IMG/VR virus record: IMGVR_UViG_3300045961_000282
Span: 124,001 to 188,000 of that record
Direction: 5' to 3' (one strand)
DNA: 64,000 nucleotides
This document shows positions 1,576 to 38,993 of this stretch, one piece after another. Numbering within the stretch: position 1 is the first letter of the stretch; each line of letters begins with the position of its first letter. The notes below the pieces were generated by a model that ran no database searches, was not told the origin of the DNA, and saw nothing but the letters and a program-made list of their open reading frames with translations. The translations under genes were made by a program, and so were the position numbers.

Positions 1576-2700
1576 CTACTCCATCGTCGCGGCGACGGCG
1601 TCCAACTGATCCGCCGAAGCCCGCAGCGCAGCCGCCTTGGCGCGCAGGTCCGCCACCGCTGGGTGCGGCTTGGACGTCTCCGGCTGCGGCTCGGGTTCCC
1701 ATGCGACCGAGCGCAGGAACTGGTCGCGGGCGATGACGCCCCATGAGGTCGGCTTGACGTTGCTCCCGTCGGTCAGGGCATTGACGTCGAACCACGGGCC
1801 GAACAGGAACGGGATGGCCCCGGCGAAGTTGGGTGAGTCCTTGAACCTGCTGGCGAAGAACGCACAGGCGTCCTTGGTCCACTGCTCGCTGACCGTGTCC
1901 GGCGTTCCGTTGTAGTTGCCGAACTCGCTCTCTTCCATGACGTGCTTGGTCGAGGTGCCGCCGTTGTCGGCGATCCACTTCGCCCGATCCCACTTCTTGT
2001 CCTTGAACTCGTTGGCGTAGTCATGGCGGCAGAACATCAGTTGGTGTGTGCCGTTCATCCCCGGCTGCGCTGCGTCGTGGGCCTCCAGTTCCGACATCCG
2101 CCCGTCGTCATAGGAGTGGCTCCAGTGAATCGTGTTGATTGCCAGCACGCCGCGGTAGCCGATACTGCGCCAGTGGCTGACGGCGGCCTTCATCGACGGC
2201 GTCCACTGAGCCCACGTCACGTTGTTGGGCTCATTGAAGGGCTCGTAGATGACCGCCGGGTTGTCCTTGAACAAGGCGTTCACCTTGGCCATCATGTCGA
2301 AAGCCTCGGTTGCTCGGCCGGGCCATGCCGACCCTTGGCTCAGGGAATCCCACCAGCAGATCTGCGTGTACATGCCCGCCTTGGTGGCCAGATCGACCCA
2401 CTCCTTGGTGCGGTCGAGGTACTGCTGCTTGGTCAGCCCCCACTTCTGCCCGTTGTAATCGGTCGCATCGAGGCGAAGTCGCACGAGGTTGGCACCCCAC
2501 GACCTGATGGTGTCGATGACCGTCGTGCGGCCCTTCCACTGATGCTCGGCGTGCTGCGCATGCCACTGGTCGTACCCGGGCACCCCCCACACGCAGACGC
2601 CCGCGACCTGCAGGCGGGGACCCTTGGCCGATCCACGGCGCAATGAAGCGGGCGAGGATGAGGTGGCGGGGACGATGACGGGGCGTTCGAGGGCTGCCAT
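1576..2700 (-). CDS. glycoside hydrolase family 5 (cellulase-type)
   Basis: NLVRL; IYEPFNEP acid/base motif; SEFG nucleophile motif; leaderless TACCGT promoter before MAALERP; no signal peptide. Confidence 0.8.
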   Translation of the reverse strand: MAALERPVIVPATSSSPASLRRGSAKGPRLQVAGVCVWGVPGYDQWHAQHAEHQWKGRTTVIDTIRSWGANLVRLRLDATDYNGQKWGLTKQQYLDRTKEWVDLATKAGMYTQICWWDSLSQGSAWPGRATEAFDMMAKVNALFKDNPAVIYEPFNEPNNVTWAQWTPSMKAAVSHWRSIGYRGVLAINTIHWSHSYDDGRMSELEAHDAAQPGMNGTHQLMFCRHDYANEFKDKKWDRAKWIADNGGTSTKHVMEESEFGNYNGTPDTVSEQWTKDACAFFASRFKDSPNFAGAIPFLFGPWFDVNALTDGSNVKPTSWGVIARDQFLRSVAWEPEPQPETSKPHPAVADLRAKAAALRASADQLDAVAATME

Positions 2701-2728
2701 GCGTCCACGGTAGCCCACGGGTCAACCG

Positions 2729-3727
2729 TCAGGAAGCAAGAGACGCCGCAGCCTGCGGCCACCACACTCCTGCGGGCGGCTCGCCCCGGCCGCACTCGCC
2801 ATCAGAGTTTCCGGGCTGCTTGATCCACAGGTAGGCGTCGGCGCCGGGCTCATCGGTGCCAGTGGTGGGGCTCTTCCCCAGCCGCGCCGTCATGCTGTTG
2901 CACCAGTCGCCCGGTTCGACGGGGGCGCCGTTGCGGCTGACGTCGATCACGTAGCGCGTGACGCCAACCCGACGGCCCATCTCGCGTGCATATTCGGCGC
3001 TGCGGGCCGTGGAAACGTGGTTGGACACGTTCACTGCGATGCCGGTGGCCCGACGAACTCCGGAACGCCCCAGCGCCCGCGCGAGTTCTGTGCGATCCAG
3101 TTTCCATGTCGCGTTTCCTGCGTCGAGGTAGACACGGGTTTCCCCCTCGGTCAACAACGTCACCGCCTCGGACAGCAGGGCGTACCGATTCTTCGTCCCA
3201 CCTTGGACCTGACATCCGTCGACGGCCTGCGCGACCGCATCTGGCTCAATGATCACGATGGCCCGACGACCCCCGATGCCAGCCGCGATCTGCTGAACCC
3301 AGCGCAGGTACTGCGCGTCCGTCCGAGCCCCGCCCTTGGAGTACAGGCCGCAGTCGCGATCAGGGATCCCGTAGACGACGATCATCGGGACCTGCCGGGC
3401 GACGGCAGCCTCATCGACCAAGCGATCCACGGCTGCGGTGGGATCTCGGAAGGGATCGGTGAACCATACGGCCGTCGGTTGGGCGGCTATCCGGGCAGTT
3501 GCTTGCACCAGTTCCGACGGCGCATCGTCGGGCAGGTTGTTCAGTGCCCAGACCGCCGAGCCCTGCGGACTTCGGTACAGCGTTGCCCCAGCCAGCGGAT
3601 TGCTGACCGACTCGGGAGCGTTGGCCACCTCCGCCGATGGGCGGCACGCCGTCATCGCGAGGGTGGCAACAACAACGAAGGGCACCCAGAAGGGTGCCCT
3701 TCGTTGGTTTCGATCAACTCTCGACAC
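2729..3727 (-). CDS. cslZ: GH6 endoglucanase lipoprotein, CslZ-like
   Basis: AQPTAVWF, VYGIPDRDC, IEPDA, YLDAGN, VIDVSRNG, DAYLWIKQPGNSDGEC; lipobox-like LAMTAC; GTG start overlapping the glxA stop. Confidence 0.85.
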   Translation of the reverse strand: MSRVDRNQRRAPFWVPFVVVATLAMTACRPSAEVANAPESVSNPLAGATLYRSPQGSAVWALNNLPDDAPSELVQATARIAAQPTAVWFTDPFRDPTAAVDRLVDEAAVARQVPMIVVYGIPDRDCGLYSKGGARTDAQYLRWVQQIAAGIGGRRAIVIIEPDAVAQAVDGCQVQGGTKNRYALLSEAVTLLTEGETRVYLDAGNATWKLDRTELARALGRSGVRRATGIAVNVSNHVSTARSAEYAREMGRRVGVTRYVIDVSRNGAPVEPGDWCNSMTARLGKSPTTGTDEPGADAYLWIKQPGNSDGECGRGEPPAGVWWPQAAASLAS

Positions 3728-5624
3728 GGACCCACTTCGCAATCGAGGGCACTCCGTTGCTGTCGATGGCGAACAGCATGTAGTAGCCGGAGGGCACCAT
3801 CCCGAGGGAGTCGGGCACGATGCCGGTGGCGATTCCATCCTTGACGGCAAGGTCCTCCAGCGCGATCGAGCGCTGCTCGGGGTCGGTCAGGTGAGTCACC
3901 GCGCTGGGGCGGATCAACCGCATCCGATCGATGTCGCCCGTGACCTCGACGCTGATCCGCTCCCCGCGCTCCACGCTGGCCGGGGCCGCAAGGATCTCGG
4001 GCCGCGGCGTCCCCGTGAACAGGTACGGCGGGCGGTAGACCTCGATGCGGGTCTCGAACGTGCCCGGCGTGTGATTGTGCTCGTCGCCGAACAGCGGGTC
4101 AGACCCAATCGTCATCACCGAGCCGTCAGGCAGCAGCGCCGCCGTCGAGTGGTAGTTGCGCCCGATGTGGTTCGGCGCCGCCTCGATCAGCGTGTTGGTC
4201 GCCGGGTCCAGCATCATGGTCAGGCGCAGGTCGGACAGGCTCCTGCCCCGGTAGTCCCGCGAGCCGCCCGTGAGCAGAGTCTTGTCGTCAGGCAGGGTCA
4301 CGGCGCTGATGTACCGGCCCGGCTCAGGGTAGTCCGGTCCCGGCTCGTAGCGCGGCGTGTCGCTGGCATCGAGGTCGACGATGTCGATCCGGTTGGTCGA
4401 CTTGTCGCTCTCGCCCACGCCGCCGCCGCCGATAATCGCCACGCGCTGATCCTGTGCTGGGGCGAGCATGACCGACGACGACGTCTCGTTCATCTCTGGA
4501 TCGCGCAGTCCATCGACGTCCTGCCATGAGTTGTCCGACACGTCCCACAGGCCGGGCTGGCGGCCCTCATCGGCAGCGCCGTAGCCCGTGCTCGACCCGG
4601 AGTAGAACAGCCGCCCATCGGCCATGCGGAACAGTGACGGGTAGGTCGGGAAGAACCGATCCACCTTCCCGTCGTAGTGCCACGTCCCGTCACCGACGTT
4701 GAAGACCTCGTTCTGCCCCTCAAGGATGTAGCCGTGCTCGTCGAGGCCGGACACCGCGATGATGTTGTCGCCGTTGAGCGACACGAGCGTCGGATACCAG
4801 CGGGCGAAGTTCATGTCCTCGGTCTTGATGTACTTGCGCTGCTCGACGGAGTAGATGTAGGACGAATCCAGCCCGGCGTAGTTCTGCTTGTCCATCGTGA
4901 TGACGTTCGACCAGCCGTACAGGTTCTGCTGCTCGGCGTTCGAGAGGCGGGTCAGGTCGATGCGCTCAGCGTGCTCGGTCATGGCGTATTCCTTGCCCTC
5001 TTCGACCGCCTCGACCCACACGTTGGCCTGCCCCGAGGTCCACTTCCCATCCACGTCGCGGGCAGCGGGGATCACCCGATCCTCGGTGGTCACGTACTCC
5101 ATGCCGTTGGCGCGGCGCCAGACGTCGCCCTTCTTGACCTCGAACGGCTCTCCGGACTCGTTCTTGATCCACAGCGCCCCCGCAGCCTTCTTGACGTTGT
5201 CGGGCAGCACCTCGTACTTGGAGGTTCCTCCGGCCACCAGTAGGTCGCCGTTGGGCAGGTAGGCGTGGCCACCGCAGAACAGGTCCTCGGGGGTGTCGAC
5301 CTTGGTCGTGTCTCCGGTGACCGGGTTCCACAGAACGGTCTCGAACGTGCCTGCCTCGAACGCCTTGCGGCTGTTCCCCGAGCCAGCCAGCAGCAGCACT
5401 TCGCCGGAATACAGCAGGGCCGTGTGGATCGCCCGCACGCGGTACTCGTCAGGCAGTTCGATGGTCTGCCACTGGCCGTGCTCGCGGATGTAGTCCGGGC
5501 GTCCCTCGCGGTAATCCTGATAGGCGCGGGCCCCTGCGGGCCCGATGACGACGGCGTTGATCGACAGAATTCCGACCACGGCGACCGCGGTCACTATCCG
5601 ATTTCTGGTCCGGGCTGAGATCAT
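3714..5624 (-). CDS. glxA: galactose oxidase-like copper radical oxidase (AA5), GlxA-like
   Basis: DLFCGGH (Cys), RWYPTL (Tyr), RNYHS (Tyr-His) and VTH (His) ligands; N-terminal membrane anchor; ATGA overlap with cslA. Confidence 0.9.
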   Translation of the reverse strand: MISARTRNRIVTAVAVVGILSINAVVIGPAGARAYQDYREGRPDYIREHGQWQTIELPDEYRVRAIHTALLYSGEVLLLAGSGNSRKAFEAGTFETVLWNPVTGDTTKVDTPEDLFCGGHAYLPNGDLLVAGGTSKYEVLPDNVKKAAGALWIKNESGEPFEVKKGDVWRRANGMEYVTTEDRVIPAARDVDGKWTSGQANVWVEAVEEGKEYAMTEHAERIDLTRLSNAEQQNLYGWSNVITMDKQNYAGLDSSYIYSVEQRKYIKTEDMNFARWYPTLVSLNGDNIIAVSGLDEHGYILEGQNEVFNVGDGTWHYDGKVDRFFPTYPSLFRMADGRLFYSGSSTGYGAADEGRQPGLWDVSDNSWQDVDGLRDPEMNETSSSVMLAPAQDQRVAIIGGGGVGESDKSTNRIDIVDLDASDTPRYEPGPDYPEPGRYISAVTLPDDKTLLTGGSRDYRGRSLSDLRLTMMLDPATNTLIEAAPNHIGRNYHSTAALLPDGSVMTIGSDPLFGDEHNHTPGTFETRIEVYRPPYLFTGTPRPEILAAPASVERGERISVEVTGDIDRMRLIRPSAVTHLTDPEQRSIALEDLAVKDGIATGIVPDSLGMVPSGYYMLFAIDSNGVPSIAKWVRVES

Positions 5625-7342
5625 GGAGCGGCCCTTTCAAGGCTTTGGGTGCTGATGATGTCGTCGTTGGACTTGCTGAGGTTCATGACCACCGGAGCAA
5701 GGCAGACGACGATCGCCAGCATCGCCCACATGCGCATCATGAAGTGGTCGTGGCCCAACGGAACGGATGCCACAAACGCGGAGGTCAGCAGTGCCCCCCA
5801 TGCCAGATGACGCGTCCGCCAGAACGTGGACATCCTCTCACGGCCCTGCGGTGCCGGTCCCTTCGGAGTGACATTGAACGCGCCGGGCTTGCGGCTGACT
5901 GCGTGCCACAGAGCCGTGACGTACAGCGGGGCCGACAGAATGGACACGGCCATCCCCGACATGCCGGACGAACCATGCTCCTCGTGCGGGGACACGTTGT
6001 GGCGGCGGTTCCAGAAGTAGATGCCCAACTGCAGTGCAGCGGCGTTGAGGTACAGCATCAGCCACAGACCCGCGGTGACCACGACGCTGCCGATGCCGGT
6101 GAGCAGGTACATCACGAGGTTGAAGGTGCCGATGATCCACGTCAGGGCGGCAGTCGGGTAGTAGGACATCAACATCATGTAGTGCACCCGGCGCCGCCAC
6201 GGCAGGGTAGGCATCAGGGTGCGGAACTGCCGGACCACCACGTCGTCGGTGCCGCGCGACCAGCGCACCTGCTGAGTGAAGTAATCGCCCCAAAGCGATG
6301 GACCTTCGCCGACTGCAAGCACGTCGGGGGTGTAGACCGACTTCCACTTGTTCCCTGTCGCCGGGTTGACCGACGCGTGCCAGACGATGCTGGTCGCGGC
6401 GTCCTCGGTGATGGAGTCCTGCAGCCCGCCGATCTCCATGAGTGCCGAGATCCGCACGGCGTTGTTGGTTCCGACGAACATTGCGCAGTCCCACGTGTTG
6501 GCCGCGCGCTGCAGCACGGAGTGGAACAGGTACTGCTGGCTCTCCGCGGCGCGGGTCACGAAGTTGTCGTAGTTGCCGTAGACCTGCGGGCCGACCACGA
6601 ACGCGACGTCGGGGTCACGGAAGTAGCCCAGCAACCGCTCGGCGAAGTTGGGCAGCGGCACGTGGTCAGTGTCGACCGAGATCCAGTAGTCGTAGTTGTA
6701 CCCGTGGGTGAACAGCCACGAGTTGTAGTTGCCGTGCTTGGTCTTGGCCTTGTACCGACCCTCAGCGGTGTTCCACTCCTCGATGCCCTTGCGCGAGAAG
6801 TGCCGCACGCCGATCTCGGCGCACATCGCCTTGACCTCGTCGTCGTCGCCCTCGTCGAGCACCCAGACGTCCAGAACACCGGAGTGCCTGATCTGCAGGG
6901 CGGCCTCGAGGGTCCGCCGCAGCATGTGCAGCGGTTCCTTGCCGGGCACGATTGTGGTGATAAAAGCCACTCGGCTGTCGGTTTCCGGCAGGACCGGAAT
7001 CGGGTCACGGGCGTGCACGGTGGCCATCGCCAACGTGCCGACGTTGATCAAGCGGAACGTCTCGATGGCTCCGATGAACACGATCATCGTGACGCTGACG
7101 GCGAGTTGCCAGCCACTCTGCCCCTGCGGGTAGTGACTGGGCCACATGAGCCAGATCAGGAACACCGACTGGAACAGCAGCGCTGCGCTGACCAGAAGGA
7201 TGGACCACAGGCGAGCCCTGCCGTGATTGAGTCGACGGTACTCAACAGTGTGCTCAGGACCTGCCTCAACGGGCTCACCGGCCAACTCGCTGTACCGGTC
7301 GTAGTCGTAGTGATACGTCTGCACGGTCCCCTCTTCCTGCAT
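5621..7342 (-). CDS. cslA: cellulose synthase-like processive GT2, CslA-like
   Basis: LDEG, KHGNYN, VDTDH, FVVGPQVYGN, ITED, QQVRW; multiple TM helices; N-terminal YDYDRYSELAG resembles Streptomyces CslA; start approximate. Confidence 0.9.
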   Translation of the reverse strand: MQEEGTVQTYHYDYDRYSELAGEPVEAGPEHTVEYRRLNHGRARLWSILLVSAALLFQSVFLIWLMWPSHYPQGQSGWQLAVSVTMIVFIGAIETFRLINVGTLAMATVHARDPIPVLPETDSRVAFITTIVPGKEPLHMLRRTLEAALQIRHSGVLDVWVLDEGDDDEVKAMCAEIGVRHFSRKGIEEWNTAEGRYKAKTKHGNYNSWLFTHGYNYDYWISVDTDHVPLPNFAERLLGYFRDPDVAFVVGPQVYGNYDNFVTRAAESQQYLFHSVLQRAANTWDCAMFVGTNNAVRISALMEIGGLQDSITEDAATSIVWHASVNPATGNKWKSVYTPDVLAVGEGPSLWGDYFTQQVRWSRGTDDVVVRQFRTLMPTLPWRRRVHYMMLMSYYPTAALTWIIGTFNLVMYLLTGIGSVVVTAGLWLMLYLNAAALQLGIYFWNRRHNVSPHEEHGSSGMSGMAVSILSAPLYVTALWHAVSRKPGAFNVTPKGPAPQGRERMSTFWRTRHLAWGALLTSAFVASVPLGHDHFMMRMWAMLAIVVCLAPVVMNLSKSNDDIISTQSLERAAP

Positions 7343-7445
7343 GACGTGAGTATGGACGGTTGCGCCAGCAGGCCTTCCCTGTCTGACGAGTTGCCAAACC
7401 CTACCACGATTTGGATCCCTGCTAGTCCGTGCTAGGGTTTGCCCC

Positions 7446-7658
7446 GTGAGTGACATGGACCGCGACGCAGCGGTGGCCGGGGCCCTGTTCCTTGGATTCG
7501 TCGGAACCATCAGCCTGACAGTGGGGATCGCCATACTGTTCGGAGCCGGGTGGGCGTTCGTCGCCTTCGGGGGGATCACCTTGGTCAATGCATGGCTCAT
7601 GGGGGTGCGGAAGAGCCGCAGCAACGAAACCCTGCTTTTCGCCAACACCAACAACTAG
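7446..7658 (+). CDS. small two-TM membrane protein (leaderless)
   Basis: TAGGGT -10 element 7 nt before the GTG; hydrophobic. Confidence 0.6.
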   Translation: MSDMDRDAAVAGALFLGFVGTISLTVGIAILFGAGWAFVAFGGITLVNAWLMGVRKSRSNETLLFANTNN

Positions 7659-7669
7659 GAGCAAGTCTC

Positions 7670-8020
7670 ATGGCACGTGAAGTTCAGATCATGACGTGGT
7701 GCGACCACTGTCTCAATGAGGAGAACCTGCAGGTCGAGGGCATGACGTACGTCGGGCTGAACAGCGCCGGGGCGCGCGTCGAGATCGACCTGTGCGCCGA
7801 GTGCGCCGAGTCCTTCCTCACCCCCGCCCTGTCGGCGCTGGACGCCTACGGGCGCGATGAGCCCAAGCCAAAGCGGCGCAAGCGCGTCGAGAGCCCGGCG
7901 CCCGCGGGCGGCCAGTGTCCCGACTGCGACAAGACCTTCCCGACCAAGCAGGCGCTGGGCATGCACCGCTGGCGTGCGCACAACGTCCCGGGCGAGGGTA
8001 AGGGCAAGAAGTCGGCCTGA
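7670..8020 (+). CDS. Lsr2-like dimerisation domain fused to a C2H2 zinc finger
   Basis: VEIDLCAEC..FL...LDAYGR resembles the Lsr2 N-domain; CPDCDKTFPTKQALGMHRWRAH is a canonical C2H2; RBS AGGAG. Confidence 0.7.
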   Translation: MAREVQIMTWCDHCLNEENLQVEGMTYVGLNSAGARVEIDLCAECAESFLTPALSALDAYGRDEPKPKRRKRVESPAPAGGQCPDCDKTFPTKQALGMHRWRAHNVPGEGKGKKSA

Positions 8021-8052
8021 CCAACACAACCACCACCTACAAGGGGGGATCT

Positions 8053-8670
8053 ATGCGTTTGATCGTTGCACCGCACGCCGATGACGAAGTGCTGGGATGT
8101 GGCGGCCTGCTGGCCAAGTACCCAGACGAGTGCTGGGTCGCCGTACTCTCGGACAAGAACGATGGTCGGATGACGGAGTTCTACCGGGCCAAGGGTGTTC
8201 TCAGGTACAAGCACAGCACCAAGGCTGACTTCGTCACCGGGGAACTGGCGGCACGGTCCCGTGAGGTCACGACGTGGCTGGATCAGTTGATCAAGCAGAT
8301 CAAGCCGAATGAGTTGTACCTGCCGACGCCGGGTGCACATCAGGACCACATCGCGGCCTACGAGTCGGGCGTCCGGGCGGCACGCCTGTCCTACACCAAT
8401 GGGGCGTGGTTCGTCCCCGCGGTGTTCCTGTACGAGATCCCGTCATACAGCACGGACCTGTACACGATCCCGTACCCGTGGAACCGCTTCGAGGTGCTCA
8501 CCGAGGAGCACATGGATGCCAAGGCGAAGGCCATCGAGGCCTACGCCTCACAGATGAACGGCGCGTTCAATCCTGCGCACTTCGCCCGCGAGCACGCTCG
8601 ATTCATCGGGGCGCAGCGCAATGTCGCTTATGCCGAACAGTTTGCGGTGGTCAGGGAGGTCCGCGCATGA
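8053..8670 (+). CDS. PIG-L/LmbE family N-deacetylase
   Basis: APHADDEVLGCGG and HQDH metal-binding motifs. Confidence 0.9.
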   Translation: MRLIVAPHADDEVLGCGGLLAKYPDECWVAVLSDKNDGRMTEFYRAKGVLRYKHSTKADFVTGELAARSREVTTWLDQLIKQIKPNELYLPTPGAHQDHIAAYESGVRAARLSYTNGAWFVPAVFLYEIPSYSTDLYTIPYPWNRFEVLTEEHMDAKAKAIEAYASQMNGAFNPAHFAREHARFIGAQRNVAYAEQFAVVREVRA

Positions 8671-9323
8671 TTCTTGCGGCACATCAGTTGAACTTCATGC
8701 CGTATTCCGGTTTCTGGTACAAGATGGAGAAGGCCGATCTGTTCGACCTTCGCTATCAGGCCCAGTACACCGAGAAGGGGTACATCCGCCGGGTCAAGAT
8801 GCGCGACGCGTGGTGCGCAGTTCCTGTTGTCGACAAGCCGAAGTACGAGCCGACCAATGAGGTCCGCATCGACATCGCCAAGGCGCGAACGCAGATCTGC
8901 AACACCATCAAGGGTCGGTACGCAGGCGCCCCGTACTACAAGCAGCGTGGCGGCGACCTGATCGATCGGATCCAGAGTCTGGACACCGGCTACCTGTGGG
9001 AGTTCAACCTCGAACTCATCCTGTACCTGCGCGATGTTCTCGGGATCCAAACCCCCCTGACACTTGGAGTGGATACCATCGGCGGCAAGGCCGAGGGGGT
9101 CCTGAGTTTCATGCGGGTTTACCCCGGGGTAGAGACTTACCTGTCAGGGATCGGCGCCAAGGCGTATATGGAGGACACGTCGATCTTCGACGAGGCGGGG
9201 ATCAAGATCGAGTGGTCGAGGCACCGCGCGGTCACGCACGATTCGGTCGTCACCCTTCTGATGGACTACGCCGACCCCATGGAAATCATCATGCTTGAGA
9301 ATGAAGGGGACCAGAATGTCTGA
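8667..9323 (+). CDS. WbqC-family protein
   Basis: AHQLNFMPYSGFWYKM..AD and YLSGIGAKAYM motifs; ATGA overlap. Confidence 0.8.
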   Translation: MILAAHQLNFMPYSGFWYKMEKADLFDLRYQAQYTEKGYIRRVKMRDAWCAVPVVDKPKYEPTNEVRIDIAKARTQICNTIKGRYAGAPYYKQRGGDLIDRIQSLDTGYLWEFNLELILYLRDVLGIQTPLTLGVDTIGGKAEGVLSFMRVYPGVETYLSGIGAKAYMEDTSIFDEAGIKIEWSRHRAVTHDSVVTLLMDYADPMEIIMLENEGDQNV

Positions 9324-9402
9324 TTCGTGCGCCCGTGGGTGCCGCGTGTTCTCGCGCAAGGAAAAGACGCAGGTGTGCATTGTCTGTGGAAAAGCAGAGT
9401 GA
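9316..9402 (+). CDS. 28-aa Cys-rich mini-ORF
   Basis: Overlaps the wbqC stop and the next GTG; CARGC and CIVC. Confidence 0.35.
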   Translation: MSDSCARGCRVFSRKEKTQVCIVCGKAE

Positions 9403-9536
9403 GTGATCGCCTGCACGTTTATGGTCACACTGAGGATTGCGCGTGTCTTGCGTGCTCCTTCCTGAATGCCATAGCCGCCGCGCCCGGGGAGCGGACGTCG
9501 GACAAGATCAAATACGTTTTAGGAGACAGTGAATGA
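9399..9536 (+). CDS. 45-aa Cys/His mini-ORF
   Basis: GTGA and ATGA overlaps bridge it to the dehydrogenase; HTEDCACLAC. Confidence 0.4.
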   Translation: MSDRLHVYGHTEDCACLACSFLNAIAAAPGERTSDKIKYVLGDSE

Positions 9537-10777
9537 GCAAGGTGCTGATAGTTGGGATGGGCTACGTCGGCCTGCCTATCGCCGTACGTGCCGCCGAGGT
9601 TGGCCACGAGGTCATCGGCGTGGACGTGAGTCAGGACAAGATCGACTCGATCGCCACTGGGATGTCCTACATCGAGGACGTCAGCGACGAGCGGCTGCAG
9701 GCCGTGGTTGCATCAGGGGCCCTGCGGGCCACCGACCTCAGTGAGCGACACTCCTTCGAGATCGCGCTGATCACCGTGCCGACGCCGGTCGACGCGATGA
9801 AGCGGCCCGACCTGCAGTTCATCGAGGCGGGGGCGAACTACGTCGCCTCCTGCATGAACGGCGGCGAGGTTGTAGTGCTGGAGTCCACCACGTACCCCGG
9901 CACCACCGAGGATGTCGTCGCCGAGCGCATTCGCCGGATCGCTGGGCTGGAGCCGGAGCGCGACTACATGCTCGGGTACTCGCCTGAGCGCATCAATCCC
10001 GGCGACTCGGTGAACACCTTCGACACGGTTCCCAAGATCGTGTCCGGCACCGATGCGGCCTCGCTGGCGAGGATCCAGTCGTTCTACGACACGCTGGTCC
10101 AGCGGACCGTCCCCGTGTCCTCGCCGCGCGCGGCCGAACTGGCCAAGGTGTTCGAGAACACGTTCGCTCAGGTCAACATCGCGCTGGTCAACGAACTGGC
10201 ATTGGTCTGCTCCGAGTTGGGCCTCGACGTCGATGAGGTTCTCGACGCCGCCGCCACCAAGGGGCACTCGATCATGCGGTTCCGTCCCGGCCCCGGTGTC
10301 GGTGGGCACTGCATCAGCGTCGACCCGCTGTACCTGACGTGGATGCGGCGCAACATGGCGGGCAAGGCGTTCCGGTTCGCCGAACTGGCCGATGAGATCA
10401 ACGGCGGCATGCCCGAGCACGTGGTTCACCGGGCCCGCTCGGTGCTCAACGACCACGGGGTTCCGATCTGGAACTCGCGCATCGGCGTGCTGGGGGTTGC
10501 CTACAAGCCCAACGTCGCCGACATCCGGGAGTCTCCGGCTCTGGTTCTGGTTGAGCGACTGCGCGAGACCGGCGCGGAAGTCTCCGTGTTCGATCCGCAC
10601 GTCAACACCGCTGAGGATGCTGAACTGGCGGCAAAGTCCGCGGGGTCGTTCGACCTGATGATCGTGGCCACCGATCACGACGACTTCGACTACGAGGCCA
10701 TCCACAAGGGTGCCCGTGTCATCCTCGACACACGCAACCGCTACCCTCGGGGCACGGCGCGGGTCCACAAGTTGTGA
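9533..10777 (+). CDS. nucleotide-sugar (UDP-HexNAc/UDP-Glc) 6-dehydrogenase, WecC/WbpA/TviB-type
   Basis: GMGYVG Rossmann motif, ESTTYPGTT, KVFENTF..VNIALVNE, GGHCI catalytic Cys. Confidence 0.92.
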   Translation: MSKVLIVGMGYVGLPIAVRAAEVGHEVIGVDVSQDKIDSIATGMSYIEDVSDERLQAVVASGALRATDLSERHSFEIALITVPTPVDAMKRPDLQFIEAGANYVASCMNGGEVVVLESTTYPGTTEDVVAERIRRIAGLEPERDYMLGYSPERINPGDSVNTFDTVPKIVSGTDAASLARIQSFYDTLVQRTVPVSSPRAAELAKVFENTFAQVNIALVNELALVCSELGLDVDEVLDAAATKGHSIMRFRPGPGVGGHCISVDPLYLTWMRRNMAGKAFRFAELADEINGGMPEHVVHRARSVLNDHGVPIWNSRIGVLGVAYKPNVADIRESPALVLVERLRETGAEVSVFDPHVNTAEDAELAAKSAGSFDLMIVATDHDDFDYEAIHKGARVILDTRNRYPRGTARVHKL

Positions 10778-10820
10778 CCGCTTCCAAGGGGGGGTGTCTG
10801 CTGTGACCCAAGAATTCCTC

Positions 10821-10931
10821 ATGTCCTACGGACAGATCACCATCATCGGCCTCGGGTCGTTGATAGGGCTGAGCGCGGTCCTGATCCATCGCGTGCGCAC
10901 TCGCCATCACAAGTACGGGAAGGGATCATGA
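10821..10931 (+). CDS. 36-aa single-TM peptide
   Basis: Hydrophobic segment followed by a basic tail; ATGA overlap with the GT2. Confidence 0.45.
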   Translation: MSYGQITIIGLGSLIGLSAVLIHRVRTRHHKYGKGS

Positions 10932-12265
10932 CTCCGATAGGTCGCAACACCCCGGCTCGCGGTCTGGGCATGGTGGCCAGCCTGATCTTCATCGGGCTGT
11001 TCATCGGCTACTTCTCATGGTCGGCCATGGGCTGGATCAACCAGAGCGGCGCATGGTTGCTGGTCGGTTTCTTTGCCTTCTTCGCCACCATCACGCTGGG
11101 GAACATGATCTCCGGGCTGTTCTGGAAGTCGTTCACCGACCTCCCGGTCCCCGACGCCCGCGTGGTGGCCATCGTGCCGATCTATGCGGAAAAGACCGAG
11201 CGGGTCCACAAGGTGGTGCTCTCGCTGATCCATCAGACTCGCCCGCCGGACCACATCTACGTGGTCGACGACGGCTCCGAGCCACCGCTGGTGGGCTTCG
11301 AGCACCCGCTGGTGACGTGGATCCGACAGGAGAACGCAGGCAAGCGCCACGCGCAGGCACGCGCACTGGCCGAGTTCGACCGCGATGAGTACGACCTGAT
11401 CCTCACTGTCGACTCGGATTCGGTGTTCGACGCCGATGCGGTTGAGCACCTGATGCGCCCGTTCAACCACTCGGACATCCATGCCTCGACGGCGATGATC
11501 TACACGTCGAACTGGCGGGCCAACCTGATGACCCGGTTCACCGACATCAACCTGCAGATCTCGTGCTTGCAGATGCGGATGCTCCGCTCGTGGATGGGTA
11601 TTGTTACGCCGACCTCGGGGGCCATCGCCATCTACCGGCCGTGGGTGTTCTTCGACAACCTCGACGACTACCTGACCTCAGGCAACATCGGCGACGACCG
11701 ACGGCTGTCGTTCTACGCGCTCATGAAGGGCCGTGTCGTCACGGTCAACGAGGCGGCCTGCGAGACGCACCTGCCCGAGACGCCGCGCGGCATTTTCAAG
11801 CAGCGCACCCGTTGGGCCAAGTCGGCATGGCTGGGAACTCCCTTCGTGTGGACCAACCTCAAGCCGCTGGTGGTGTTCTTCTACACCTACCCGCTGCTGT
11901 TCGCCCTGCTGTGGCCGCTGTCGGTGGCGTTCCTGTCGTGGATCTGGATCGCCTACGGCATCCCGTCGCTGATGTACGGCGTCGCCTTCTGGTTCGTCAC
12001 GTCGTTCACGATGACCGGGGCTGCCTATGCCCAGCGGCCCTCGATGCCGTTCGGGCAGAAGGTGCTGCAGGTCGGGCTGTCCCTGCTCTACCCGATCTGG
12101 GGTCTGATCCTGCTGCGTCCCGCGGCGTACAAGGCGCTGGCCACCGTCCGCGATCAGAGTTGGGGGACCCGTGGAGCCGATGCTCCTGAGCCTGAGATGG
12201 ACGGCGTGGCCCCGGCCCCATCTGGTGGGCGCGTGATCGGCCTGCCCAAGAGGACTGCCGCCTGA
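10928..12265 (+). CDS. processive GT2 of the hyaluronan synthase/NodC type
   Basis: DDGS, GKRHA, VDSDS, GDDRRL and QRTRW motifs; N- and C-terminal TM helices. Confidence 0.85.
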   Translation: MTPIGRNTPARGLGMVASLIFIGLFIGYFSWSAMGWINQSGAWLLVGFFAFFATITLGNMISGLFWKSFTDLPVPDARVVAIVPIYAEKTERVHKVVLSLIHQTRPPDHIYVVDDGSEPPLVGFEHPLVTWIRQENAGKRHAQARALAEFDRDEYDLILTVDSDSVFDADAVEHLMRPFNHSDIHASTAMIYTSNWRANLMTRFTDINLQISCLQMRMLRSWMGIVTPTSGAIAIYRPWVFFDNLDDYLTSGNIGDDRRLSFYALMKGRVVTVNEAACETHLPETPRGIFKQRTRWAKSAWLGTPFVWTNLKPLVVFFYTYPLLFALLWPLSVAFLSWIWIAYGIPSLMYGVAFWFVTSFTMTGAAYAQRPSMPFGQKVLQVGLSLLYPIWGLILLRPAAYKALATVRDQSWGTRGADAPEPEMDGVAPAPSGGRVIGLPKRTAA

Positions 12266-12323
12266 GCGCTCACGGGGCTACTGTGGACGTACCAGAACGG
12301 TCACCTCACCAAGGAGTACACCC

Positions 12324-13526
12324 ATGCCCTCATTTCGCGAGGTCATCACGTCCATCTCGGGCTTGACCCACTACTACGCGCTGGACGACAAGACCAAGGC
12401 CACTGACTTGGTCGGCAAGATCAACGGCAAGGTCAACGGCAACGTCATGTTCGGCGCCAACGGGGCGACGTTCGACGGCAAGTCCAGCATCGAACTGGCC
12501 AACAGCGCCGACTTCTCCCCGGCTGGCACGGCGTCCAAGGCCCTGACCATCATCGCCTTCCACACCGTCACCGACTGGAAGCGCCAGTCGCACAACAACG
12601 AGTACGTCCACTGGATGGGCAAGGGCCGCACAGGCGCCCACGAGTGGGTGTTCCGGTACTACATCGACGGTGGCAGCGGTGAGGCGGCGACCCGCAAGCG
12701 GCGCACCTCGTTCTACTCGTTCAACCCGGCGGGCGGTCTGGGCACCGGCTCGTACTTCCAAGACGACGACGCCGCGGGCGTCGAGCGGGTGATCGGCGGC
12801 ATGGTCTGGGGCAACTCAGCCAGTGGCTCGACGCAGATGTGGAAGAACGGCGTGATCCGCGACACCGACGCGCTGAGCACCTACTCGGTCAACCCCAAGC
12901 ACACCGACGCCCCCGTGTTCCTCGGGTCGCGTGGGGACAACACGGGCTTCCTCGTTGGTCGGCTGCGCCGGGTGGCCTTCTTCAACCGCCGCCTCACCGA
13001 GGCTGAGATGAAGAAGATCTACGACGCCCGCAACTTCGTCGAGGTCGAGGAGGCCGTGACGCCTCCGCCGGTCGTGACTCCTCCGGCGGTGCTCGGCGAT
13101 GTCTACGTCGGCGCCAGCAAGCGGGCGTACAACGGGAAGAACGCAGCGCGCGCCGCGGACACGCTGGTCGTCTTCGACGATGCGTATGGTTCGAAGACCG
13201 ACACCAACGAGTGGGGGGCCGAAGTCCTGATCGAGAAGGGCAAGGTCACCGCCGTCCTCGACCAGCGCACGGGCGCAGAGGGAGCCAAGAACCTCGCCAT
13301 CCCCAAGGGCGGGGTCGTGCTGTCCGGCCACGGAGAGGCTCGCACGTGGCTGCTGGAACACGCGAAGGTCGGTGTGGTGGCTTCGGTGGGGTCCCCGCCC
13401 GTGGCGCCCGCTCCTGACCTCTCCGCGCAGGCCAAGGCAATCCGGGCGCAGGCCGCCGCGCTGCGCAAAACCGCGGATGAACTGGATGCCACTGCGGCGT
13501 CCATCGAGAAGGAGACGAGTGGCTAG
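12324..13526 (+). CDS. LamG/concanavalin-A-like domain protein with a second carbohydrate-associated module and a coiled-coil tail
   Basis: YYALDD, FDGKSSI, FLVGRLRRVAFFNRRLT LamG pattern; IPKGGVVLSGHG module; no signal peptide. Confidence 0.65.
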   Translation: MPSFREVITSISGLTHYYALDDKTKATDLVGKINGKVNGNVMFGANGATFDGKSSIELANSADFSPAGTASKALTIIAFHTVTDWKRQSHNNEYVHWMGKGRTGAHEWVFRYYIDGGSGEAATRKRRTSFYSFNPAGGLGTGSYFQDDDAAGVERVIGGMVWGNSASGSTQMWKNGVIRDTDALSTYSVNPKHTDAPVFLGSRGDNTGFLVGRLRRVAFFNRRLTEAEMKKIYDARNFVEVEEAVTPPPVVTPPAVLGDVYVGASKRAYNGKNAARAADTLVVFDDAYGSKTDTNEWGAEVLIEKGKVTAVLDQRTGAEGAKNLAIPKGGVVLSGHGEARTWLLEHAKVGVVASVGSPPVAPAPDLSAQAKAIRAQAAALRKTADELDATAASIEKETSG

Positions 13527-14382
13527 GAGCACCATCCTGCGGGTGGGGGCGGCGACAGGCGCCGCCCTCGCCCTGCTGCTCACCCTGACCGCAGGCGTCT
13601 GGTCGCATCAGGACCGCACCGACGCCTTCAGCATCACGAACCTGTACCGCTCAGACCCCACAGGGCAGCGCTGGGCCGCCGACTGGACCCGGGAGTGGTC
13701 CAATGACCCATGGGTCGAGCGCGGCAGCAACAACGTGCGCTACCGCACCGAGAACGGTGTGCTGACCGTCACTGGGCCGACCAGTCGGCTCTACGTGCGC
13801 AATCCCGACATGAAGACCCAGTGGGGCAACGTCGAGGTGACCGTATACGGATACCGGGTCGCCGACGAGAACATCGGGTACTCCGGAATCGTCACATCGG
13901 CACGCACCAACCACGGCGTCTCGGATCCACTGGAATCCGCCCCGTGCGACTCTCGGGCCATCGCGGCACGGATGCGCTTCGATGGTTCCATTGACTTCGG
14001 AAAGGAAACCTCACATCCGACATGGGAGGCCGTTCCAGCCGGGATATTGTTCCCCGGCGGTCTGCCGTACAACAAGTGGATCGGCTACAAGCACGTCGTC
14101 TATGACATCCCCGGCGGGACCCGGCAGGAACTGTGGGTCGACCTCACCGAGGGCCGCAATGGCGGGACGTGGCGAAAGGTGGCGACCCACGACGACACCG
14201 GTCAGGTCGGCGAAGTCGCCTGTGCGCCCGACGTCGATCCCGCCCTGCCGCTGACCCTTGGCAAGCGCGACGGCTCCGAGAGTGGGCTGCCCAACCTCTC
14301 CGTGCTGTTGCGTGCCGATGGCGTGGATGACCTGCGCTACAAGTGGTTCTCCGTGCGCGACATCATTCCGCCGCGCGGCTGA
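13519..14382 (+). CDS. secreted Trp-rich beta-sandwich protein (possible carbohydrate-binding or lyase-like)
   Basis: Signal peptide; KWIGYKHVVY..ELWVD..WRKV; GTG start overlapping the previous stop. Confidence 0.55.
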   Translation: MARSTILRVGAATGAALALLLTLTAGVWSHQDRTDAFSITNLYRSDPTGQRWAADWTREWSNDPWVERGSNNVRYRTENGVLTVTGPTSRLYVRNPDMKTQWGNVEVTVYGYRVADENIGYSGIVTSARTNHGVSDPLESAPCDSRAIAARMRFDGSIDFGKETSHPTWEAVPAGILFPGGLPYNKWIGYKHVVYDIPGGTRQELWVDLTEGRNGGTWRKVATHDDTGQVGEVACAPDVDPALPLTLGKRDGSESGLPNLSVLLRADGVDDLRYKWFSVRDIIPPRG

Positions 14383-14842: not shown

Positions 14843-15139
14843 TTACTCGCCGCACCAACCGTTCGGCGCGTCCCATGAGGGTACCGGCTGCAGCGCCGCC
14901 GCGGAGGCATCGCGCGACGTGCTGATGAAGCCCGCCCCTTCGATGCACAGGGCGACCATGGTCGGGTGCAGGTTCACGTTGGCGACCATCCGCACCTTGT
15001 CCGGGTCGGTGATAGGGACGCCCTTGAGGTCGCGGGCCTCCTGCGCGCTGCCGATCGGGCCGCCATCAGCGCAGGCGGCCACAGTCAGGCCGACCAGAGC
15101 GATGAGGGCTCCCGCGGCGACCGTGCGTGCGCGGTTCAT
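14843..15139 (-). CDS. small lipoprotein
   Basis: Signal peptide with lipobox VAAC; ATGA overlap. Confidence 0.7.
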   Translation of the reverse strand: MNRARTVAAGALIALVGLTVAACADGGPIGSAQEARDLKGVPITDPDKVRMVANVNLHPTMVALCIEGAGFISTSRDASAAALQPVPSWDAPNGWCGE

Positions 15140-15873
15140 CAGGCGCCCAGCAGGTAGTCGAAGATCTTCTTGCCGACGTGCACGTCGGTGATCTCCATCG
15201 AGTTGGCCTGCTCGCGGGCGAACTTGACCGCGTCCATCAGGGTGTCGACGCGAACGAGCAGTTCGGCGACCCGATCGGCCGGAACGGCACCGGAGAACTT
15301 GGTGGTCGACCAGTAGCCGACGACCTGATCCTCGTAATACATCTCGACCTGCGCCGGGTGCTTGTCGGTGGCCGGGGCCTTGACGTGGTTCTGCGGCACC
15401 TTCTTGGTCCGGGTGGTCTCGGTGACCTCGGTCGCCCACGCGCCCGCGGCGGCGTCGTGGTGCCACTTCTCTGAGGGATCCAGCGTCGGCAACTTCGAGA
15501 TGAAGGTGCGGATGTCGGTGATCTGCTTCTCGAGGAACAGCAGGCCGGTCACCGGGACATCGGCCAGCACGACGGTGCCGTCGACGACCACGTCGGCGCG
15601 GGCCTGCTGATTGGCGGCCTCCTTGGTCATGGTGACGTCGAAGAGCCGGGTCAGGTCGCGGCCGAGGTTGGCGAGGATCGTCTCGGCGTTCAACTGCACC
15701 AGCGTGGACTCCGAGGGCAGCCGGTCGCCCTCGTCGTCCTTGGGCCGGTAGGTGCGCGAGATGCCCGCGAACCGGGCTTCCTTCTGCAGCGCGTGGTAGG
15801 CGTCGGAGACTGCGCGGTGCGCGTGGGCCCGCACGCCCTTCTCGACAGCGAGGATCTGGTTCAACTTGGTCAC
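15139..15873 (-). CDS. conserved hypothetical protein (KLNQI.AVEKG / KHPAQVE family, common in actinobacteria)
   Basis: Recognisable family motifs GISRTYRPKDDEG, LLFLEKQ, TKKVP.NHVKA.AT.KHPAQV; own promoter and RBS. Confidence 0.8.
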   Translation of the reverse strand: MTKLNQILAVEKGVRAHAHRAVSDAYHALQKEARFAGISRTYRPKDDEGDRLPSESTLVQLNAETILANLGRDLTRLFDVTMTKEAANQQARADVVVDGTVVLADVPVTGLLFLEKQITDIRTFISKLPTLDPSEKWHHDAAAGAWATEVTETTRTKKVPQNHVKAPATDKHPAQVEMYYEDQVVGYWSTTKFSGAVPADRVAELLVRVDTLMDAVKFAREQANSMEITDVHVGKKIFDYLLGA

Positions 15874-15917
15874 TGTGTCATTCCTCTTTCAGGTGGTGCT
15901 GGGAACTGTATCACGGC

Positions 15918-16520
15918 TCAGGGGGTGGCAATCACCGAGGTGTCCGTGGTGATCACCGAGGTGTCCACCGAGGCCGTCTCGCCCAGCACATAGGACGACA
16001 CCGAGCGGGTCAGCCCGGCATAGGTGCTCGACGTCTCCGTGGCGGAGTAGGACACCGGGGCGAACCCGACCGACGCGCCGGTCCGAACCGCCGAGAGGTC
16101 TGAGGCGAGGAACACGAACTCCCACCCGTCGGCCTTCGCGGCGTCGATCAGGTCGGACACGGACTCCTTGGTGTACTCCCGTGAGGCGTTCTCGCCGCCG
16201 TCGGTGACGATGACCATCACGACCTTCTCGGCCGGGTTCTTGGCCACGTGCTTGCGGGTGGAGGACACCGCCTTGCCGATCGCGTCCAGCAGCGCCGTGG
16301 CGCCGCGCGGCGTCAAGGTGTAGCCCGGCCACGCCGAGGCAACCACGGGCTTCACGGCTTCGGTGATCTTGTCGTCGAAGTCCCACAGGGCGATCGACAC
16401 GTCGTCGTTGCCCGCGAACTCCGCGACGAACGACTCGATGCCGCCCTGCGCGTCCTCGCGGGTCATCTGCATCGACCCAGAGCGATCGATCACCAAGCAC
16501 ACGTGCGCGGATGCTGTCAT
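15918..16520 (-). CDS. stand-alone von Willebrand factor A domain protein
   Basis: MIDAS DRSGS, TALLDAIG, TDGGENAS. Confidence 0.85.
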   Translation of the reverse strand: MTASAHVCLVIDRSGSMQMTREDAQGGIESFVAEFAGNDDVSIALWDFDDKITEAVKPVVASAWPGYTLTPRGATALLDAIGKAVSSTRKHVAKNPAEKVVMVIVTDGGENASREYTKESVSDLIDAAKADGWEFVFLASDLSAVRTGASVGFAPVSYSATETSSTYAGLTRSVSSYVLGETASVDTSVITTDTSVIATP

Positions 16521-24038: not shown

Positions 24039-24389
24039 TCAGGCCTCGACGTGCTCCGGGGCCGGGGGGTTGTTCACGATGTAGGCATCCATGACGTGCT
24101 TCGGGATGCGGCCCCGATCCGGGACCGGCAGGCCGTTGGCCCGTGCCCACTGCCGGACCTCGCTGCCACCCTTCGAGCGGCGCTTGCCCGTGCGTGCGCG
24201 ACCGGCGATCGGGGTGCTGGTGGTCGGGCGGCCCGCGGCGATGAACGGGGCCAGCGCGTTGGCCAGCATCTCGCGGTTCGCCGCGCCGAGGTCGATCTCG
24301 TAAGACTTCCCGTCAAGGGCGAACGTCACGAGACGAACGCCGTCCTCGCTTCCATCGAGGTCGTCGATCTTCACCTGTCGCATTGCCAT
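24039..24389 (-). CDS. lsr2: Lsr2 nucleoid-associated protein / xenogeneic silencer
   Basis: DDLDG, FALDGKSYEIDL, VRQWARANG..V.DRGRIP. Confidence 0.95.
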   Translation of the reverse strand: MAMRQVKIDDLDGSEDGVRLVTFALDGKSYEIDLGAANREMLANALAPFIAAGRPTTSTPIAGRARTGKRRSKGGSEVRQWARANGLPVPDRGRIPKHVMDAYIVNNPPAPEHVEA

Positions 24390-27432: not shown

Positions 27433-27504
27433 GGGGCGAACCATATCCCGCCGTCTCGGGTGTCAACCGCGGTTCATGCTCGATTCACGCGCGATGAATC
27501 CCGC

Positions 27505-38810: not shown

Positions 38811-38993
38811 GCGCACACACGCGCGCACCACCGTCAAGAGCGCCCGCACCGTCAAGGTGAAGTGACCCTGAACCTTCCCAAGAAGGCCCCCGCTTCGGCG
38901 GGGGCCTTCGTCGTCTCCGAGAGTTGCTGTTCCTGAGGTTCCTGTGCTATGGTTTACCTACCAACACAACCACCACCACGAAAGGAGGCCCTC

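Follow-up and report, generated by a model that had tools for sequence, protein, structure and literature searches.

The window analysed here is a 64,000-nt stretch (positions 124,001 to 188,000) of the 206-kb IMG/VR contig IMGVR_UViG_3300045961_000282. Four co-directional minus-strand genes are found at positions 1576-7342: cslA (GT2 synthase), glxA (radical copper oxidase), a gene for a GH6 lipoprotein, and a GH5 gene, all with catalytic residues intact. The initial annotation had described this cluster as a cslA-glxA-cslZ locus plus a GH5, and that observation is confirmed by our analysis, with some corrections to the gene boundaries and orientation given below.

The cslA gene (5621-7342, minus strand) encodes a multi-TM, processive GT2 that is beta-1,4-glucan (cellulose) synthase-like. 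It matched Pfam GT2 families and aligned to BcsA (5EJ1/4HG6, E 2e-18). The D, DxD, TED and QxxRW motifs (LDEGDD, VDTDHVP, SITEDAAT, and QQVRWSRG) and the FxVTxK gating loop (FNVTPKG) are all present, and these are conserved in phage and cellular copies. Five hydrophobic segments were detected. Comparison with a diverged phage-like contig carrying the same genes (L002) showed a 1-nt indel upstream of GTG 7321, which suggests that the true start is GTG 7321 rather than ATG 7342.

The glxA gene (3714-5624, minus strand) encodes a membrane-anchored radical copper oxidase, the partner of CslA, and its ATG overlaps the cslA stop codon (ATGA). It matched Streptomyces lividans GlxA (4UNM) at E 2.9e-154. 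The Cys of the Tyr-Cys cofactor (DLFCGGHA), the W-Y, the Y-H, and the second His are all conserved in the alignment. The GlxA-specific beta-barrel and GO-like E-set domains (PF21110 and PF09118) were hit and a TM segment lies at residues 10-28, consistent with an N-terminal anchor. The score against the NCBIfam equivalog for radical copper oxidase GlxA (NF052501) was 770.4 bits (E 1.3e-231, over the full length), just below the cut-off of 800 bits; the model appears to be tuned to Streptomyces sequences.

The GH6 gene (2729-3727, minus strand), the CslZ equivalent, matched Pfam GH6 at 1.9e-56 and Mycobacterium tuberculosis Cel6 (1UOZ) at 2.4e-54, with the catalytic motifs PDRDC, EPD, and SDGEC present. 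The N-terminus, MSRVDRNQRRAPFWVPFVVVATLAMTAC, has an Arg-rich n-region and a lipoprotein signal ending in LAMTAC, as read directly from the sequence. The initial annotation had stated that the three genes are joined by overlapping start and stop codons. However, glxA and GH6 overlap (by 14 nt) only if GH6 starts at GTG 3727, whereas database gene calls use GTG 3685. GH6 is co-directional with glxA here, while in Streptomyces it lies on the opposite strand (PMC9040799).

The GH5 gene (1576-2718, minus strand), encoding an endo-beta-1,4-glycanase, follows after a gap of 10-28 nt; the database gene call starts at ATG 2700 (374 aa). It matched Pfam cellulase at 4.7e-22 and contains the NEP and ESEFG glutamates, and E157 and E259 are invariant in 40 homologues. 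The AF2 model (pLDDT 88.9) predicts a (beta/alpha)8 barrel. PDB sequence hits were endoglucanases, whereas the top Foldseek matches to the model were a mixture of GH5 glucanases and mannanases, so the fold cannot separate the two. No signal peptide is possible, because the ORF opens 10 nt after the GH6 stop. Cellular homologues carry a lipoprotein signal that both phage copies (the second is 74% identical) have specifically lost, and a C-terminal linker plus helix was found only in the phage copies. This remodelling was missed in the initial annotation.

Adjacent glycan module and phage-type genes

The cassette abuts a second, divergently transcribed glycan module, also missed in the initial annotation, which changes the picture from one captured operon to a phage glycan island. 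The intergenic region (7343-7445) contains sequence blocks conserved in L002, including the inverted repeat CCAAA-N11-TTTGG. A scan for sigma-70 promoters and terminators was at chance level. The module begins with two small plus-strand genes (7446-8020) encoding a ∼67-70-aa membrane protein and a ∼116-aa Cys/His-rich (zinc-finger-like) protein, conserved in L002 at 61 and 71%. They are followed by a PIG-L (CE14-type) de-N-acetylase and a WbqC-family protein (8053-9323, plus strand; PF02585 and PF08889), which are conserved in L002, in a second diverged phage-like contig (L001), and in L123 and L124, related phages without cslA. A UDP-sugar 6-dehydrogenase (9533-10777, plus strand) has all three Pfam domains and scored 388 bits against TIGR03026. 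The nearest curated families are UDP-ManNAc and UDP-GlcNAc dehydrogenases; WecC and TviB were the best equivalogs, both below their cut-offs.

The next gene (10928-12265, plus strand) encodes a compact, membrane-integrated, processive GT2 that is hyaluronan-synthase/NodC-like. Pfam GT2 and a weak Chitin_synth_2 were detected, with four TM segments. A PDB sequence search was empty, and the best NCBIfam hit was NodC (9e-28), at 97 bits against a cut-off of 550, so that sequence-level membership is not supported. The AF2 model (pLDDT 89.1) has Chlorella virus HAS (7SP8) as its best PDB fold match (E 5.8e-17, TM 0.65), and cellulose and chitin synthases scored lower. A LamG/ConA-like 400-aa protein and a membrane-anchored or secreted ORF follow (12324-14382, plus strand). 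They are conserved in L002, L123, and L124; a weak Laminin_G_3 match was the only Pfam evidence, and a PDB sequence search with the LamG-like protein gave no hit.

The phage hallmark gene of the window is a terminase large subunit interrupted by an intein (25588-27444, minus strand), identified by PHROG and by Pfam Terminase_6N/6C and Intein_splicing. The best tblastn hits were Actinomycetia phage DSL-LC01 (52%) and large Microbacterium and Gordonia phages (42-48%). Lsr2-like and PNK PHROG hits, an MmeI-type restriction-modification system, an HNH endonuclease, and a 3,976-aa ORF on the left flank were also found, and most remaining genes are ORFans. No homologue of any gene flanking 80 cellular cslA loci was present, apart from the cassette itself. 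No portal, capsid, or tail gene was recognized among about 55 ORFs scanned in the window and the 14 kb to its left (roughly 78 kb in total). Viral status rests on the terminase, the other phage-type genes, the relatives, and the IMG/VR label.

A nucleotide search of window positions 1-25000 against deposited phages gave no match. Gene-by-gene comparison with the first 98 kb of the 129-kb genome of DSL-LC01, the nearest terminase relative, indicated that only the terminase is shared with the window, and this phage thus gives no backbone synteny; the 3,976-aa ORF has no match in it. A portal-based scan of IMG/VR returned only DSL-LC01 relatives. No GlxA homologue and no close CslA homologue was found in 50,697 deposited phage records, and no paper in the literature searched reports one. 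An IMG/VR scan with a CslA alignment returned only the window's own contig and one distant GT2, and a scan of JGI metagenomes found no further phage-clade CslA.

Integrity and origin of the cassette

The initial annotation had named misassembly or a host-prophage junction among the outcomes that would overturn it, and we examined both. The GC content of the cassette is 0.652, compared with 0.655 for the rest of the window and 0.67-0.745 for cellular relatives. A Logan contig from a second assembler (L098) is 100% identical over 9.65 kb and spans both junctions, although it may derive from the same reads as the JGI assembly and is not necessarily an independent sample. L002 together with contig L096 is syntenic with the window, including flanking ORFans (CslA 79%, GH6 72%, and GH5 74% identity). 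In L001 the terminase is directly followed by module 2, CslA, GlxA, and GH6. Phage-type genes lie on both sides of the cassette, for at least 14 kb to the left and 56 kb to the right. We concluded that an artefact is very unlikely, even though the locus is otherwise chromosomal in all named genomes and virion genes were not seen in the stretch scanned; identity to any named genome is only 60-65%.

All catalytic motifs are intact in every phage copy. The dN/dS between phage copies is 0.17-0.24 for CslA and 0.32 for GlxA, indicating purifying selection. The dN/dS of GH5 against its cellular homologue is high (0.68), and GH6 sits on a long branch.

The description of the locus as Streptomyces-type was not supported. 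CslA (placed inside the actinobacterial CslA clade in a tree of 48 sequences), GlxA, and GH6 all branch within a Geodermatophilaceae/Nocardioidaceae/Kineosporiaceae assemblage at 60-73% identity, vs. about 55% to Streptomyces, and an AU test rejected grouping with Streptomyces (p 0.0003). The GH6 orientation also matches the non-Streptomyces form. The three trees agree in placing the phage clade as sister to an environmental clade (L006-L009) inside this assemblage, consistent with capture as one block. We considered whether L006-L009 are also phage-borne; their flanks (IS fragments, an L,D-transpeptidase, and a Macro domain; GC 0.67-0.69) look cellular, but this is not settled. A GH5 homologue (45%) lies beside the GH6 in a Nocardioidaceae MAG. 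The possibility that PIG-L, WbqC, and the rest of module 2 belong to the ancestral cellular cslA locus was rejected, since only one cellular-looking contig (L010) has a distant PIG-L nearby.

Possible roles of the phage glycan island

The explanation we favor, with moderate confidence, is that the window belongs to a ∼206-kb uncultivated actinobacteriophage. An ancestor of a small subclade of this phage group would have captured cslA-glxA-GH6 in one piece, with a GH5 that is also adjacent in at least one cellular locus, from a non-Streptomyces actinobacterium near the Geodermatophilaceae, Nocardioidaceae, and Kineosporiaceae, and placed it back-to-back with an older phage glycan module. Our analysis establishes that the genes are intact, compositionally assimilated into the phage genome, conserved in at least three diverged phage genomes, and under purifying selection; enzyme activity, expression during infection, the polymer, and its benefit are inferred. 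In this view CslA, with its obligatory partner GlxA, would polymerize UDP-glucose into beta-1,4-glucan and extrude it through the membrane, as the S. lividans pair alone does in vitro (PMC11022532). The exported GH6 lipoprotein would trim the chain or help it cross the wall as CslZ does, which is needed for deposition of a glycan that protects against lysozyme (PMC9040799). The infected cell would become coated with cellulose and probably with a second amino- or uronic-sugar polymer from module 2. The GH5 would accumulate in the cytoplasm and reach the glucan only when the membrane is breached at lysis, acting as a coat-opening accessory lysis enzyme, or alternatively it travels with the virion. 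Its presumed co-transcription with the synthase fits timing by compartment but does not prove it. The likely benefit, the least certain step, is shielding of the infected cell from further phage adsorption, from muralytic enzymes, and from osmotic or desiccation stress during a long infection cycle. GlxA needs copper loading and maturation factors (Sco and DtpA in Streptomyces) that are not encoded in the window, so activity would depend on the host.

The interpretation in the initial annotation was thus partly supported. The phage-like genome, the complete triad plus GH5, and the absence of a known phage copy held, whereas the proposed coat, and its suggested purposes of receptor masking or superinfection exclusion, protection from lytic enzymes, or aggregation, remain inference. 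Its suggestion that the signal-less GH5 removes the layer at lysis or entry gains indirect support from the loss of the signal in both phage copies.

Among the alternatives, lysogenic conversion is possible but unlikely: a temperate element or phage-plasmid would express the island from the prophage state and give its host extra matrix, aggregation, or stress tolerance, rather than coat a cell about to lyse. The cassette reads like accessory cargo, a self-contained divergent operon pair with a conserved intergenic region; an Lsr2-like silencer and the MmeI-type system are present; and in Streptomyces the polymer serves attachment, pellet formation, and lysozyme protection (PMC9040799; PMC11022532). 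However, no integrase, repressor, or partition gene was found among the roughly 55 ORFs scanned, which leave out most of the contig; the IMG/VR name carries no provirus coordinates; and loss of the GH5 export signal makes more sense in a lytic setting. Somewhat less likely, the phage copies may replace or boost the host's own CslA-GlxA machinery, keeping polar wall growth and envelope integrity going during a long infection by a large phage without creating a new barrier. The genes are close orthologues of a host morphogenesis and wall-protection system, taken from the probable host clade, and replacement of host bottleneck functions is common for phage auxiliary genes. This does not explain the remodelled cytoplasmic GH5, or the tight linkage to a second, non-host-like synthase module that exists in related phages without cslA.

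Equally doubtful is that CslA-GlxA and module 2 act together on a mixed or decorated beta-glycan, in which case GH6 and GH5 would have a different substrate. The two modules stay adjacent although their order and orientation differ between the window/L002 and L001, GH6 and GH5 families include enzymes active on other beta-1,4-glycans (PMC9040799; mannanase fold matches above), and the role of GlxA oxidase chemistry in the polymer is still unresolved (PMC11022532). On the other hand, module 2 occurs alone in L123 and L124, so it works without CslA, and the Streptomyces pair makes unmodified cellulose in vitro. An assembly or prophage-border artefact is very unlikely for the reasons given above.

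Compared with the actinobacterial cslA-glxA-cslZ system (S. coelicolor SCO2836-2838; S. lividans CslA-GlxA complex), the three protein families, the catalytic and cofactor residues, the translational coupling of cslA and glxA, the GlxA anchor, and the GH6 lipoprotein are the same. The differences are carriage by a phage, the phylogenetic placement, the co-directional GH6, the extra GH5, and the absence of lpmP, stlP, and SCO2835 neighbors; the cassette lacks the LPMO and stomatin-like partner of the Streptomyces system. Chloroviruses are also large dsDNA viruses encoding membrane-integrated processive synthases plus a sugar-nucleotide dehydrogenase (PBCV-1 hyaluronan synthase with UDP-glucose dehydrogenase; CVK2 chitin synthase); some carry two different synthases, and they cover infected cells with hyaluronan or chitin (PMC5408694), although a benefit of the coat has never been demonstrated. 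Here the host is bacterial, the cellulose system needs a copper-oxidase partner, the genes sit in operons with cognate hydrolases, and the polymer is only predicted. Mycobacteriophage LysB, a mycolylarabinogalactan esterase without an export signal, cuts an outer, non-peptidoglycan envelope layer at lysis, as we propose for the GH5. The GH5 is instead a glycanase encoded in the synthase operon, not in a lysis cassette, its target would be made by the phage's own operon, and its role is inferred only. Phage seroconversion glycosyltransferases (Gtr-type O-antigen modification) alter the host surface, classically to block superinfection, but are single transferases that modify existing glycans. 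The annotated "cellulose synthase" of Synechococcus phage S-CBWM1 is an uncharacterized lone GT2 (31% identity over 38% of CslA), whereas here a complete synthase, partner, and hydrolase system is present.

A broader reading, which we consider only tentatively, is that a lineage of large actinophages routinely rebuilds the surface of the infected cell with virus-encoded extracellular polysaccharides. All members would carry a hyaluronan-synthase-like system, and a subclade would have added the captured cellulose synthase complex and turned a host lipoprotein glucanase into a cytoplasmic enzyme, timed by its compartment, that opens the self-made coat at lysis. This would be a bacterial counterpart of the chlorovirus coat and a new class of accessory lysis function.

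Viruses that make their hosts spin an extracellular polysaccharide coat are known only from algal chloroviruses, where the purpose is still unsettled. A bacteriophage with a complete cellulose synthase complex, its hydrolases, and a second HAS-like synthase offers a genetically simpler system for asking what such coats do. The finding also shows that the CslA-GlxA system, described as conserved in streptomycetes, is widespread outside Streptomyces and mobile. The remodelled GH5 suggests a new kind of lysis accessory enzyme, and the phage proteins, as compact and diverged variants of CslA-GlxA, could help define which parts of this unusual synthase-oxidase pair are essential.

A cslA-glxA-GH6-GH5 cassette in a phage-like contig

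Four co-directional genes were found on the minus strand of window positions 1576-7342. CslA (5621-7342) is a multi-TM GT2 that aligned to the BcsA structures 5EJ1/4HG6 at E about 2e-18, and the D, DxD, TED and QxxRW motifs as well as the FxVTxK gating loop are all present. GlxA (3714-5624) was a very strong match to the known enzyme: it matched S. lividans GlxA (4UNM) at E 2.9e-154 and the NCBIfam GlxA model at 770 bits, slightly below the cut-off of 800 bits. The cofactor Cys, the Trp-Tyr, the Tyr-His and the second His are conserved, and an N-terminal membrane anchor was identified. The GH6 (2729-3727), a predicted exported glucanase, gave a Pfam E-value of 1.9e-56 and matched M. tuberculosis Cel6 (1UOZ) at 2.4e-54. 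It keeps the catalytic Asp motifs and begins with an Arg-rich lipoprotein signal read from the sequence. The GH5 (1576-2718) is a predicted glycanase that carries the NEP and nucleophile glutamates. Its AF2 model (pLDDT 88.9) had GH5 endoglucanases and mannanases as the best PDB neighbours. No signal peptide is possible for the GH5 because the ORF opens 10 nt after the GH6 stop. The gene set described in the initial annotation was thus confirmed, with small corrections. The cslA and glxA genes overlap by ATGA, the glxA/GH6 overlap depends on the start chosen (3727 or 3685), and comparison with a related contig points to GTG 7321 as the real cslA start. A purine-rich block just upstream of GTG 7321 looks like the cslA ribosome-binding site.

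The window corresponds to positions 124,004-188,003 of IMGVR_UViG_3300045961_000282, which is JGI contig Ga0484968_0000006 (206,257 bp). Its phage-type genes include a large terminase subunit (25588-27444, minus strand) split by an intein, with Pfam Intein_splicing located between the N and C terminase domains. The best relatives of this terminase are Actinomycetia phage DSL-LC01 (52%) and 100-195-kb Microbacterium and Gordonia phages. An Lsr2-like nucleoid protein (24039-24431, minus strand) and a polynucleotide kinase (38949-39443, plus strand) gave PHROG hits. The window also contains two tRNAs and an 860-aa MmeI-family type IIL restriction-modification enzyme (51644-54226, plus strand) with the N-terminal, helicase-spacer and methyltransferase domains. 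A DUF7873 protein (E 9e-110) next to a vWA-domain protein (15139-16520, minus strand) and an M28 peptidase (41221-42222, plus strand) were found as well, whereas most of the remaining genes are small ORFs with no family match. To the left of the cassette lie an HNH endonuclease, ORFans and a 3,976-aa ORF rich in acidic residues and Ala (contigs L097, 16763-21125, and L099; ∼108-120 kb of the viral contig). This giant ORF had no Pfam or PHROG match and no match in DSL-LC01. None of the genes that flank 80 cellular cslA loci has a homologue in the window, apart from the cassette itself. Portal, capsid or tail genes were not seen in the sequence that was read, which left out about 128 kb of the contig, and the viral status is therefore well supported but not closed.

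Four lines of evidence indicated that the cassette is part of the phage. First, its GC content is 0.652, compared with 0.655 for the rest of the window and 0.67-0.745 for cellular relatives. Second, a Logan assembly (contig L098, 9.65 kb) is 100% identical and spans both cassette borders; it may derive from the same reads, so it counts as a second assembler and not as a second sample. Third, a second phage from run SRR31012057 (contigs L002 plus L096) is 76-78% identical at the DNA level and is syntenic through a neighbouring glycan module (module 2, described below), the two small genes, CslA (79%), GlxA, GH6 (72%), GH5 (74%) and the ORFans beyond. Fourth, a more distant contig (L001) runs WhiB ... 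terminase, PIG-L, WbqC, dehydrogenase, GT2, CslA (71%), GlxA (70%) and GH6, all on one strand. All catalytic motifs are intact in every phage copy. The dN/dS between phage copies is 0.17-0.24 for CslA and 0.32 for GlxA. We concluded from these sequence data that the genes have been kept working through substantial phage divergence.

Origin of the cassette outside Streptomyces

CslA homologues are common in Actinomycetota. The nearest named ones are from Nocardioidaceae, Geodermatophilus, Modestobacter and Kineococcus at 60-65% identity, while Streptomyces is at about 55%. The cslA-glxA-GH6 triad is widespread in Geodermatophilaceae, Kineosporiaceae, Nocardioidaceae, Thermoleophilaceae and Actinoplanes, not only in Streptomyces. 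Maximum-likelihood trees of CslA, GlxA and GH6 were in agreement: the phage sequences form a clade sister to an environmental clade (contigs L006-L009; CslA 71-73%), inside the Geodermatophilaceae/Nocardioidaceae/Kineosporiaceae assemblage. An AU test rejected a phage-plus-Streptomyces clade at p 0.0003 (note that the group was named after the tree had been seen).

Gene order supports the same origin. In that assemblage the GH6 is co-directional with glxA, as it is here, whereas in Streptomyces and Actinoplanes it is on the opposite strand, as the literature states for this locus (PMC9040799). A GH5 homologue (45%) lies next to the GH6 in a Nocardioidaceae MAG. Among cellular cslA loci, a GH5 beside the GH6 was found in L012 (5214-6221), and a distant PIG-L gene divergent from cslA was found in L010 (2586-3203). 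We concluded that the operon was captured as one block from a non-Streptomyces actinobacterium. The interpretation in the initial annotation was partly supported; its label "Streptomyces-type" is imprecise.

A remodelled GH5 and a second glycan module

Two features had been missed in the initial annotation. The first is that the phage has remodelled the GH5. Cellular homologues (about 47% identical) carry a lipoprotein or Sec signal directly before a conserved RPVVVPS...GPRL...GVNVWG segment. Both phage copies (window 1576-2718, minus strand, and P0122 on L096) start exactly at that segment, and both end in a Pro/Glu-rich linker plus an amphipathic helix that cellular homologues lack.

The second is that the cassette sits back-to-back with another glycan module. 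The two are separated by a 103-nt divergent region (7343-7445; L002 6073-6198) with conserved blocks, including an inverted repeat CCAAA-N11-TTTGG, which is a candidate operator. Module 2 spans 7446-14382 on the plus strand and contains a small membrane protein, a Cys/His-rich protein, a PIG-L (CE14) deacetylase, a WbqC-family protein, a UDP-sugar 6-dehydrogenase whose nearest curated families are the UDP-ManNAc and UDP-GlcNAc dehydrogenases, a compact four-TM GT2, a LamG-like protein and an anchored ORF. The predicted structure of the GT2 (pLDDT 89) had Chlorella virus hyaluronan synthase as its best PDB match (7SP8, E 5.8e-17, TM 0.65), ahead of the cellulose and chitin synthases.

Module 2 is conserved in L001 and L002, and it is present without cslA-glxA in other large phage-like contigs. 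L123 (105 kb) also carries RecA and DUF3310. In this contig the HAS-like GT2 is followed by a protein (11332-12375) with a weak lysyl-oxidase (copper amine oxidase) hit; this pair may be another synthase paired with a copper oxidase. L124 (31.5 kb) also carries an RNA ligase, a methyltransferase, Acb5, a CE4 deacetylase and a Hint/LAGLIDADG intein in the UDP-sugar dehydrogenase. Its giant ORF (3,137 aa) shares 48% identity over 188 aa with the N-terminal part of the giant ORF on the contig studied here. Module 2 is therefore the older and wider trait of this phage group, and the cellulose cassette was inserted beside it in a subclade. WbqC-family genes also occur in isolated phages: they lie next to BshB1/PIG-L-like deacetylase genes in Vibrio phages, and near glycosyltransferase and hydrolase genes in Arthrobacter phage DanielleIgnace.

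Novelty and inferred mechanism

No GlxA homologue was found in 50,697 deposited phage records. The closest phage CslA-like hit was a lone GT2 of a cyanophage, 31% identical over 38% of the protein, and IMG/VR holds only this contig and one distant case. No paper in the literature searched links cslA or glxA to phages. A different synthase-plus-hydrolase island with no GlxA was found on another viral contig (L005, IMGVR_UViG_3300047576_000046, 95.7 kb; 7211-13578), where GH16, a CslA-like GT2 (39%), GH16, a second GT2 and GH26 lie in a row next to Ro60/TROVE and DUF932 genes. The enzymes themselves are known, and virus-made surface polysaccharides are known in algal viruses; what differs here is that the synthase, its partner and the hydrolases are carried by a phage.

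The analysis established that the phage carries an intact, conserved and selected synthase, partner and hydrolase set, whereas polymer synthesis, the action of the hydrolases and any benefit to the phage are inferred. The benefit, which is unproven, could be superinfection exclusion, protection from muralytic enzymes or stress, or aggregation. In the chlorovirus precedent the benefit is still unknown after decades (PMC5408694). Other explanations remain possible, although each was considered unlikely: lysogenic conversion by a temperate element, followed by simple maintenance of host wall growth or a mixed polymer made jointly with module 2. An artefact is now very unlikely.

In this family, CslA and GlxA alone make cellulose of at least 80 residues in vitro (PMC11022532). 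CslZ is needed to deposit the glycan, and the glycan protects against lysozyme (PMC9040799). By analogy, infected cells would extrude beta-1,4-glucan and a second polymer from module 2, and the lipoprotein GH6 would assist passage through the wall. The GH5, which is predicted to be cytoplasmic, would meet its substrate only when the membrane fails at lysis. It would then free virions from the coat in the way LysB-type enzymes deal with the mycolic layer, or alternatively it may be delivered with the particle.
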